64,000 nucleotides of DNA, from the sequence record OM339718.1; one strand, given 5' to 3'. The position numbers and the translations under genes are program-made. This document shows positions 62,695 to 64,000 of the stretch, piece by piece (the stretch's first letter is position 1; each line of letters opens with the position of its first letter). The notes under the pieces are model-generated. The model saw only the letters and a list, made by a program, of their open reading frames with translations. It did not search any database and was not told the origin of the DNA.

Positions 62695-62946
62695 TTAACT
62701 ATATTGATAACCGGCGTTAGCCTTTTTCATTTCGTAATCATCATCAACAAAAACATCGTGATTACCGTGCATGATATCATGTTTCAATTTACGATCTCGC
62801 TGACGACTCAATGTATTATAACGATCTTTGACACCCGATTCTGGATAACTAGGATATTTATCTCCCAGATCCCGATTCACTTTAAGTTCATCACCATACC
62901 AACTGTCCAGATGTTTTTCATTTTTACGACGAAATGTCTTACCCAT
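62695..62946 (-). CDS. basic hypothetical protein, MGKT.RRK family of T4-like phages
   Basis: MGKTFRRK...R.LK......DD......KK.N..Y.YS. Confidence 0.7.
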   Translation of the reverse strand: MGKTFRRKNEKHLDSWYGDELKVNRDLGDKYPSYPESGVKDRYNTLSRQRDRKLKHDIMHGNHDVFVDDDYEMKKANAGYQYS

Positions 62947-62956
62947 ATATCATTCC

Positions 62957-63301
62957 TTACAGGCTTTCTATGTATTTAATCACACGGTTTAGTATTTCAT
63001 TTGAATCATTTATCTCAATATCATCAAATGCATACTTTATCTTTTTTATTACAGTTTCTTTCTTCCATCCGATCTTGAAAGCATCATTAACGAAAGAAAC
63101 CCAATCAATAATATAACCGGAATTATAAAATTTCTCTATCAGAATATCCAACGGAATACCATTTGTTTCAAACTGATAAAATATATTACATAAAACCGGA
63201 ATACCACTATTGGTATAACCATTTACAAAAACACTATTTTTACCTTTACGTCCTAACGGCTTGCGTTTAGCGGTGACATATACAACCTCTCTTTTTAAGT
63301 T
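62957..63301 (-). CDS. AlaRS-fragment-like phage protein; frame open 50 codons upstream of the first start codon (possible frameshift or pseudogene)
   Basis: F..FET.G.PLD...ID W..F..DA...GWK motif; no in-frame ATG/GTG/TTG between 63301 and 63152. Confidence 0.5.
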   Translation of the reverse strand, partial: NLKREVVYVTAKRKPLGRKGKNSVFVNGYTNSGIPVLCNIFYQFETNGIPLDILIEKFYNSGYIIDWVSFVNDAFKIGWKKETVIKKIKYAFDDIEINDSNEILNRVIKYIESL

Positions 63302-63309
63302 TTAGCTTC

Positions 63310-63364
63310 ATGTGCGGCTGCAAAGCAGGTCGAACCACCAAGGCACATACTTGTTTCGTGGTTC
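63310..63364 (-). other. predicted RNA pseudoknot immediately 3' of tRNA-Trp
   Basis: GAACCAC/GUGGUUC + CAAG/CUUG stem; loop AUGUGC pairs with downstream GCACAU; inserted CUGC/GCAG hairpin. Confidence 0.55.
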
Positions 63365-63371
63365 CGTAAAT

Positions 63372-63446
63372 TGGCAGGGCGTTGAGGATTCGAACCCCAG
63401 TCGCACGGATTTGGAATCCGGCATAATACCACTATACTAACACCCT
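63372..63446 (-). tRNA. trnW: tRNA-Trp (CCA)
   Basis: Cloverleaf; anticodon loop UU-CCA-AA; GGGG-UUCGAAU T arm; encoded 3' CCA. Confidence 0.92.
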
Positions 63447-63858
63447 AGAATCGATCCGGTCGCACCACCACCAGACTTAATAGCATTGGCTACCCGAGCC
63501 CACACATGTAAACCTCAAACACCCCAATGAGTTAAGCCTACAAGAAGGTCTTGCTCGTTACTTTTACGCTTAGGCCCTTACGGGAATCTAAGCCTTTTAT
63601 GTTTAACGTCATAACAGACGCGCTCATGTGATGGCTTGAATCAGTGGTCATTCACAAGCAATACTCCCTATGTAACCTTTTACCCGTCACGGACTGGAAC
63701 CTTATTACAGGAAAGGAACCTACATCACCATTTGAGTAATGGGAGAGGTCGGGGTTCGGTTTTTATTTTCTAGCTTTCACTAGATTTTTTACAAATACCG
63801 GTGGGCTACTTAAAGCGTCGATTCTCATAGACCGGACTATTGACGAGAATCCAAAATT
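63447..63858 (-). ncRNA. candidate large ornate structured ncRNA between two tRNAs
   Basis: At least 8 helices, GNRA tetraloops, long-range 5'/3' pairings; no ORF. Confidence 0.65.
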
Positions 63859-63934
63859 TGGAGCCGAGTGTGGGACTCAAACCCACGACCTACGGATTAC
63901 AAGACCGTCGCTCTATCAACTGAGCTAACCCGGC
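63859..63934 (-). tRNA. trnT: tRNA-Thr (UGU)
   Basis: Cloverleaf; G1-C72, C2-G71; anticodon loop CU-UGU-AA; encoded CCA; atypical U31.U39 and UUUGA T loop. Confidence 0.88.
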
Positions 63935-64000
63935 AGAGGATTATAATCAGGATCGTTAGACTGTGATTATATCCTAATGTAGTTGACATGCTATCACAAG

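Follow-up and report, generated by a model that had tools for sequence, protein, structure and literature searches.

The DNA analysed here, a window of 64,000 nucleotides (nt) from sequence record OM339718.1, belongs to Aeromonas phage P19, a T4-like phage of the Straboviridae (Emmerichvirinae, Ceceduovirus) to which it is 100% identical over the query. Near the end of the window, on the minus strand of a transfer RNA (tRNA) array, lies an interval of 412 nt (63447-63858) that starts 1 base past the encoded CCA of tRNA-Thr and stops 1 base before position +1 of tRNA-Trp. A first-pass annotation had described this interval as one highly pseudoknotted non-coding RNA clamped between the two tRNAs. 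Based on comparison with 14 related Aeromonas phages (blastn, MAFFT), the interval is shown to be a mosaic of three separately inherited, locally folded modules, which we call A, B and C. It is non-coding and has RNA structure on the tRNA-sense strand, as had been proposed, in modular form rather than as one RNA. The window stops 66 nt upstream of tRNA-Thr, and the locus is laid out as follows.

63859-63934, minus strand: tRNA-Thr, anticodon UGU, CCA encoded; upstream boundary of the interval (ARAGORN; Rfam tRNA, 66.1 bits; annotated in OM339718.1)
63769-63858, minus strand: module A (comparison with relatives)
63758-63767, minus strand: A-rich run AAAAUAAAAA on the 5' side of B1 (aligned copies)
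63664-63757, minus strand: B1 motif, about 94 nt, multi-helix (covariance model R1, covariation)
63598-63663, minus strand: B2, two hairpins (comparison with relatives)
63447-63597, minus strand: module C, structured domain of about 150 nt (RNAalifold, pair counts)
63372-63446, minus strand: tRNA-Trp, anticodon CCA; a cassette that is present or absent at this site (ARAGORN, Rfam)

Phage 65 and avDM6 lack module B (63598-63768, B1 plus B2, about 172 nt); in both, module C comes straight after the GNRA hairpin of module A. The junction lies at a short AAA repeat and resembles a deletion between such repeats. ZPAH1 and Aswh_1 carry B and C behind a different upstream sequence and have no module A, and module C is found in all 12 aligned relatives. 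The 3' end of the interval is indeed flush with base 1 of tRNA-Trp in P19, where the ARAGORN and Rfam coordinates agree. Since tRNA-Trp is precisely missing 3' of module C in six relatives (phage 65, avDM6, Asswx_1, Aszh-1, AS-sw and G2), this boundary is not a conserved feature and the proposed clamp does not hold beyond some members of the group. In phage 65 and avDM6 the tRNA-Trp sits elsewhere in the array (86% identity), and nearly every relative differs in tRNA complement and order.

Module A consists of an A/U-rich trailer (AAAUUUU) directly 3' of the CCA, a hairpin, a linker and a GNRA hairpin. It is preceded by tRNA-Thr in P19 and by tRNA-Asp in phage 65 and avDM6, in which the tRNAs ahead of it are Thr, (Ile), Ser and Asp.

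63851-63845 / 63826-63820, minus strand: hairpin GAUUCUC/GAGAAUC of module A, with the invariant loop UCCGGUC
63784-63769, minus strand: GNRA hairpin UCUAGU-GAAA-GCUAGA of module A

The complementary segments from which the pseudoknotted model had been built are all present, where it had placed them or within one base. In a 400-nt AT-rich spacer, however, chance alone is expected to produce 7-base complementarities, and they should not be taken for pseudoknots. The 412 nt contain 4 perfect complementarities of at least 7 base pairs (bp), compared with 3.56 +/- 1.78 expected from 300 dinucleotide shuffles, and 1 of at least 8 bp, compared with 0.87 expected. The three long-range pairings underlying the model are exactly these chance-level matches.

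We examined the individual helices in an alignment of 12 phages (A3). The 5' hairpin GAUUCUC/GAGAAUC is real: it has one compensatory change from U-A to C-G (phage 65 and avDM6) as well as G.U variants. The pseudoknot drawn from its loop to the 3' end (UCCGGUC/GACCGGA) has no covariation, and a G-to-A change at 63457 breaks it without compensation in AP1, AS-szw and avDM6, all of which carry both strands. For the pseudoknot pair at that base (columns 61-665) the counts are 7 C-G and 5 other, whereas the local pair that shares the same 3' base (columns 649-665) is 100% paired, with 5 C-G, 5 U-A and 2 U.G. Position 63457 thus pairs with 63473 as C-G, U-A or U.G in a local hairpin (63476-70 / 63460-54), and as judged from the alignment this hairpin, not the pseudoknot, explains the variation. 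The proposed helix AGGCUUAA/UUAAGUCU fared no better, with uncompensated changes in 5-6 of the 12 sequences that an alternative local helix takes up as compensated pairs. The local hairpins of the first-pass annotation are real, and those other than the ones discussed here never vary in A3.

These results bear directly on the idea of one discrete RNA of about 412 nt held by long-range pseudoknots, either GOLLD/ROOL-like or a new large ornate RNA. The complementary segments do exist, thermodynamic folding of the phage 65 version gives a centroid in which the hairpin loop pairs with the 3' GACCGGA, and in P19 tRNA processing at both ends would first yield a fragment of this size. Against it, module B, which lies between the supposed partners, is missing in phage 65 and avDM6, A is missing in ZPAH1 and Aswh_1, and tRNA-Trp in six phages; the pseudoknot is broken in three phages by a base that covaries locally; and the count of complementarities is that of shuffled sequence. 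GOLLD and ROOL are non-coding RNAs that are sometimes phage-borne and sometimes found near tRNA genes. Each forms one large multi-junction fold, unlike the small local domains of the P19 interval, and no Rfam family for such an RNA, GOLLD and ROOL included, is matched at the gathering score or at E <= 10 (cmscan of P19 63200-64000 and of phage 65 with its contiguous A-C). We therefore regard a single RNA as very unlikely.

Module C is the best-conserved stretch of the neighbourhood, with 93% identity to phage 65 and 98% to ZPAH1, compared with 81-86% for its flanks (tRNA, spacer and ORF (open reading frame) sequence). It contains the following helices, all on the minus strand.

63593-88 / 63573-68, inner 63584-82 / 63577-75, minus strand: helix of module C
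63557-53 / 63499-95, minus strand: helix CGAGC/GCUCG
63542-34 / 63515-07, minus strand: helix UGUAGGCUU/GAGGUUUACA (RNAalifold, covariation)
63532-29 / 63524-21, minus strand: helix of module C
63494-89 / 63484-79, minus strand: helix of module C
63476-70 / 63460-54, minus strand: last hairpin, GUCUGGU/ACCGGAU (C-G, U-A and U.G states)

Overall, 98.8% of this model is paired and four pairs have changed on both sides (RNAalifold and pair counts). Three of the four are in helix UGUAGGCUU/GAGGUUUACA (RNAalifold, eight relatives) and one is in the terminal hairpin. A GCAAGA/UCUUGU hairpin that we had considered here was replaced by the covariation-supported helix 63542-34 / 63515-07. As far as comparative analysis can establish it, module C is shown to be under selection for base pairing. 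In CC2 (L003, about 1940-2040) and Assk (L005) an insertion of about 134 nt lies within its first hairpin; the insertion contains a second copy of this hairpin with GUAAAAG, along with new sequence that includes AAGGAG, and the Assk record has a run of N at this point. ZPAH1 (L011, 2668-2752) has an extra 85-nt insertion with hairpins of its own between B2 and module C, which its close relative Aswh_1 lacks.

The second element with comparative support is B1. Its A-run of at least 4 on the 5' side is present in 23 of 25 aligned copies, and the order common to the copies is the A-run, YGACC, a variable hairpin, the invariant CCUGUAA-N-AAGGUU, a 13-15-nt hairpin and GUAAAAG. The stem of the 13-15-nt hairpin is GUC/GAC, GAC/GUC, GCC/GGC or CCC/GGG, depending on the lineage. 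In P19 the parts of B1 are:

63753-51 / 63668-66, minus strand: helix P_a, well supported
63742-38 / 63732-28, minus strand: P_b, variable hairpin (length varies; GNRA loops in several copies)
63724-20 / 63675-71, minus strand: P_c, ambiguous versus an alternative helix
63716-12 / 63680-76, minus strand: P_d, well supported
63711-63698, minus strand: invariant 14-mer CCUGUAAUAAGGUU
63697-63684, minus strand: P_e, hairpin, well supported

The covariance model R1 scores the 25 copies at 41-114 bits. It has no other match in the 64-kb window, none in the loci of phage 65, avDM6 and T4, and none in a set of about 200 chance pattern matches. In the 25-sequence alignment 87.8% of cells are paired, compared with 77.3% in column shuffles and 31-56% with slid partners, and 14 pairs have changes on both sides. 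With a plain MAFFT alignment, RNAalifold already finds P_a and P_e with covariation. The core of B1 is thus shown, from its aligned copies, to be under selection for base pairing. A function on the opposite strand is rejected, for module C as well as for B1, because their helices contain G.U pairs, which fit only the tRNA strand. The invariant loop of B1 holds CUGUAA, the six bases with which the anticodon loop (CUGUAAA) of the tRNA-Tyr encoded by these phages begins.

B2 accompanies B1 in Ceceduovirus and in ZPAH1 and Aswh_1, and is not found in the other B1-bearing phages. Its helices are invariant, so that covariation is uninformative. The first of its two hairpins had been written as GCUUG.GAAU/AUUC.AAGC; the helices are present, while the notation should be GCUU/AAGC plus GAAU/AUUC with a one-sided GU bulge.

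63659-63634, minus strand: B2 hairpin 1, GCUU-GU-GAAU...AUUCAAGC
63621-63606, minus strand: B2 hairpin 2, GCGUC-UGUUAU-GACGU

Compensatory changes were present in homologues, in the 5' hairpin, module C and the B1 motif. They bear on whether the interval could be made up of decayed tRNA genes or small ORFs with incidental hairpins. The arrays freely gain and lose tRNA genes, short ORFs are present, and one relative annotates a coding sequence of 34 amino acids (aa) that overlaps B1. The description of the interval as ORF-free therefore stands for long ORFs and fails for short ones, which occur on both strands (21-45 aa). These short ORFs are not conserved: relatives have indels of 1, 2 and 5 nt inside them, and since such indels break the frame the interval is not coding. 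Neither ARAGORN nor Rfam gives a tRNA-like hit inside 63447-63858, even at E <= 10, and a tRNA or tRNA pseudogene was rejected for this reason. Together with the compensatory base-pair changes and the conservation above background, this makes decay extremely unlikely.

B1 has a wide and patchy distribution. The central 96 nt of the interval have 84-85% identity to the T5-like Aeromonas phages Akh-2, AhSzw-1 and AhP_Mru1 (Demerecviridae, Shenzhenvirus), in which B1 is flanked by tRNA-Glu and tRNA-Ile within the phage's own tRNA array. Further copies came from shorter matches and from pattern scans; looser DNA patterns gave mostly chance matches, which were filtered with R1. Copies occur in Aeromonas phage Ahp1_CNU-2021, in Citrobacter phage Ci1 and Cronobacter phages LPCS28 and S13 (between the lysozyme gene and the first tRNA), in Shewanella phages 1/4 and 1/40 (near tRNAs), in Shewanella phage KASIA (between terL and portal) and in several IMG/VR and metagenome contigs. 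Most copies are within tRNA arrays, with one copy per genome. In KASIA and three contigs (L020, L257 and L222) B1 is away from any tRNA and adjoins terL or portal genes. In all, IMG/VR, the JGI metagenomes and 185,579 bacterial and archaeal genomes contain it in a handful of lineages. The genome scan gave only two true hits, both on phage-like contigs binned into one Phocaeicola metagenome-assembled genome. B1 is therefore phage-borne and rare, without a copy in bacterial chromosomes, and an origin in the host was rejected on the same result. The two contigs ('Phocaeicola sp. WFFMC_MAG_101'; L069 and L085) are Aeromonas-phage-like and evidently mis-binned into a genome of the Bacteroidota; one is a Shenzhenvirus-like tRNA array with 23 tRNAs and the other an Ishigurovirus-like fragment. 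L069 also encodes a tRNA with a CUA anticodon (334-408), of amber-suppressor type and called tRNA-Pyl by ARAGORN. Four related IMG/VR contigs (L027, L028, L030 and L035) have CCTGTAATAAGG followed by GTAAAA about 46 nt downstream of a tRNA gene; this is probably a coincidence, as R1 does not match L027 or L028.

Such a distribution could also be that of a small mobile or selfish element, of ribozyme type or associated with homing, of which B1 would be the RNA or the scar, spreading at recombination hot spots without benefiting the phage. B1 has 83-93% identity across unrelated phage families, its presence is polymorphic within Ishigurovirus with the junction at the short AAA repeat, and homing endonucleases or group I introns are nearby in several phages. 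In P19 a putative homing endonuclease gene is annotated between tRNA-Gly and tRNA-Asn of the same array (L001, 2595-3098, outside the window), which recalls segB of the T4 tRNA cluster. Group I introns occur in KASIA terL (L018, 87-430; Rfam 59.8 bits) and twice in L222 (239-471 and 765-990; 86.6 and 37.5 bits), on the same strand as B1 and 1.5-2.5 kb away, in phages whose B1 is outside tRNA arrays. In L020 an ORF with a treble-clef zinc finger (DUF723) and terL come after B1. On the other side, each genome has a single copy of B1, no endonuclease gene is consistently adjacent to it, no known self-cleaving ribozyme family matches and a strict descriptor of ribozymes like that of hepatitis delta virus (HDV) finds nothing, and the fold is maintained, as judged from covariation. 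We consider a mobile element quite unlikely.

No known RNA family accounts for the interval. Of the 4227 families of Rfam 15 (including transfer-messenger RNA (tmRNA), RNase P RNA, group I introns, ribozymes and riboswitches), only tRNA reaches threshold here, for the two tRNA genes, and the best non-tRNA matches at the P19 locus have E > 1. At eight other loci Rfam did not match the B1 copies and gave only tRNAs and unrelated group I introns; ARAGORN found no tmRNA. Akh-2 has a weak match to YrlA, a Y RNA-like family, in its tRNA array (L014, 1009-1127; 27.1 bits with a gathering score of 69, E = 0.083), adjoining an odd ARAGORN call (tRNA-???, 938-1010); this may be another non-tRNA RNA of the array, or chance.

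Several more specific resemblances were tried and rejected. A tRNA-like fold for B1 fails as there is no cloverleaf and the T-arm-like GGUUCCAGUCC is not conserved in other copies. Mimicry of a CRISPR repeat (an RNA anti-CRISPR) would depend on one hit, to CRISPR-DR37 (16.3 bits with a gathering score of 40, E = 8.6), and the hairpin behind it is P_e, which is freely variable among B1 copies. A likeness of P19 B1 to part of the RNase P RNA of Escherichia coli (CAGUCCGUG...GGUAAA) involves a hairpin that is not the same in the remaining B1 copies, and the models for RNase P give no hit. Theta ribozymes, minimal HDV-like ribozymes beside phage tRNAs that are active in tRNA end formation (PMC10879173), are a further comparison. 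They adjoin phage tRNA genes, the module A hairpin of P19 begins 8 nt after the CCA, and this nested hairpin with its 3' complementary tract (CGUC/GACG) loosely recalls a nested pseudoknot. Module A differs in having no room for J4/2 and the catalytic cytosine between P1 and the 3' strand of P2: in a hand fit of the HDV-like fold CGUC/GACG directly abuts P1, leaving no J4/2. From tRNA-Thr to tRNA-Trp the strict descriptor gave 0 hits and the HDV-type Rfam families were unmatched; a loose descriptor matches the module A hairpin at a rate also seen in shuffles. Both descriptors were home-made and are not the published RNArobo file.

As the first-pass annotation had stated, the tRNA cluster of T4 includes genes for small stable RNAs: rnaC and rnaD lie there, and RNAC and RNAD (species 1 and 2 stable RNAs) are derived from tRNA-region transcripts and have no known function (PMC3014915, PMC9697503). 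They are the closest analogy to the P19 modules. Both are non-tRNA species of 119-139 nt encoded on the tRNA strand beside a tRNA in the cluster, and the predicted RNAs of B1 and module C, at about 94 nt and about 150 nt, are of the same size class and likewise encoded within the tRNA cluster on the tRNA strand. The analogy does not extend to sequence (blastn at word size 7 gives chance matches of 7-10 nt, E >= 0.8), and T4 rnaC ends in a tRNA-like T-arm GGGUUCGAAUCCC that no P19 module has. B1 is also of the same type as the candidate structured RNA motifs reported from phages (PMC10690425; the Weinberg/Breaker sets), being short, intergenic and conserved in sequence with covariation. Searches for its invariant 14-mer and for tRNA-cluster RNAs found no prior description in the searchable literature. 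The P19 modules are further small structured RNAs embedded in phage tRNA clusters, an already known kind, and B1 is an undescribed motif with a distribution across phage families.

Taken together, we hold with moderate confidence that the interval is a 'beads on a string' spacer in a polycistronic tRNA precursor, in which A, B and C fold locally with A-rich single-stranded linkers between them. A sigma-70-like promoter match (ATCACA, 16-nt spacer, TATAAT; 10/12) lies just upstream of tRNA-Thr (63940-63967, minus strand), and no terminator-like site was found within 62900-64000. Thus, the modules are probably co-transcribed with the tRNAs, by read-through of the region from this promoter. Host tRNA-processing nucleases would then cut the transcript. 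Cuts of RNase E type could fall in the A/U-rich trailer after the CCA and in the A-rich linkers, an assignment that draws on established tRNA 3' processing in E. coli, and RNase P would cut at position +1 of tRNA-Trp, where this tRNA is present. The folded modules could be released as small stable RNAs, as T4 RNAC and RNAD are from their tRNA region. Each of module C and B1 most likely works independently, as a small RNA or a protein-binding element, with the invariant loop of B1 as the likeliest contact surface for a trans-acting partner. About 75 nt 3' of tRNA-Trp (63300-63371, minus strand) have 92-97% identity in relatives and hold a GAACCAC...GUGGUUC hairpin. Because this block directly follows module C where tRNA-Trp is missing, the conserved block may reach past the interval, into 63300-63371.

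The same processing scheme leaves room for modules that act purely in cis, guiding or blocking RNase E, RNase III, RNase P or 3' exonucleases or insulating the tRNAs from misfolding, and are later degraded without any independent function. Module A begins immediately 3' of the CCA whether the preceding tRNA is Thr (P19) or Asp (phage 65), A-rich linkers such as are typical of RNase E sites lie between the modules, processing is needed as there is no terminator, and weak folding z-scores suit simple hairpins. A role in cis does not easily account for module C, which is more conserved than the surrounding tRNAs and genes and is kept where no tRNA follows, nor for B1, which has an invariant 14-mer and also occurs away from any tRNA in KASIA, L020, L257 and L222. 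Other tRNA pairs of the same arrays are just 3-10 nt apart without such a spacer; P19 has further long inter-tRNA gaps of 255 and 283 nt. We consider a role in cis only as possible, although rather unlikely.

Several observations weigh against locally folding modules with functions of their own. Folding energies are unremarkable: the whole interval has a minimum free energy z of -1.42, with 8 of 100 shuffles folding equally well, module C has z = -1.0, and single B1 sequences fold no better than shuffles (z about 0). The B1 alignment used for the pair counts was fitted to the model, which favours the model. Within B1 the 5' domain helices P_c and P_x are 75% versus 65% paired, and the pairs of P_f are invariant. 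For modules A and C the alignments are limited to close relatives, and the independent compensatory events amount to about 1-3 lineages. The long-range A-C pairing AGCCCAC/GUGGGCU is uninformative because its bases are invariant, so that it is neither supported nor excluded; its GUGGGCU strand is partly used by a local helix of module C. The six-base likeness of the B1 loop to the tRNA-Tyr anticodon loop may be coincidence. Lastly, co-transcription, the cleavage sites and the stability of the RNAs are what we infer for P19.

A bolder version of the locally folding modules is that B1 represents a novel class of trans-acting phage RNA, exchanged horizontally, that resides in tRNA arrays because it works with them, and that module C is a second, clade-specific RNA of the RNAC/RNAD kind. 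We consider this unlikely as it stands. The CUGUAA of the B1 loop weakly suggests mimicry of a GUN-anticodon loop, which is speculative. If the bolder version were true, B1 could be a decoy or inhibitor whose tRNA-Tyr-like loop (UGU/CUGUAA) is offered to a host enzyme that acts on tRNAs with a GUN anticodon; candidate targets would be tRNA-guanine transglycosylase or, in a defence system, an anticodon nuclease. The role of RNAs of the RNAC/RNAD kind could then be tested with natural B-plus (ZPAH1 and Aswh_1) and B-minus (phage 65 and avDM6) phages.

Phage tRNA arrays are now viewed as a means of countering codon mismatch and host defences that target tRNAs. To our knowledge, the non-tRNA RNAs in these arrays, such as T4 RNAC and RNAD, have had no known function since the 1970s. 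The P19 locus adds two such RNAs, the structure of each being backed by comparative evidence, and the presence/absence variants that occur naturally within one genus make their function testable by simple experiments. With its 14-mer kept invariant, B1 has passed among genomes of T4-like, T5-like and siphovirus type, and this spread suggests that it carries a portable function.

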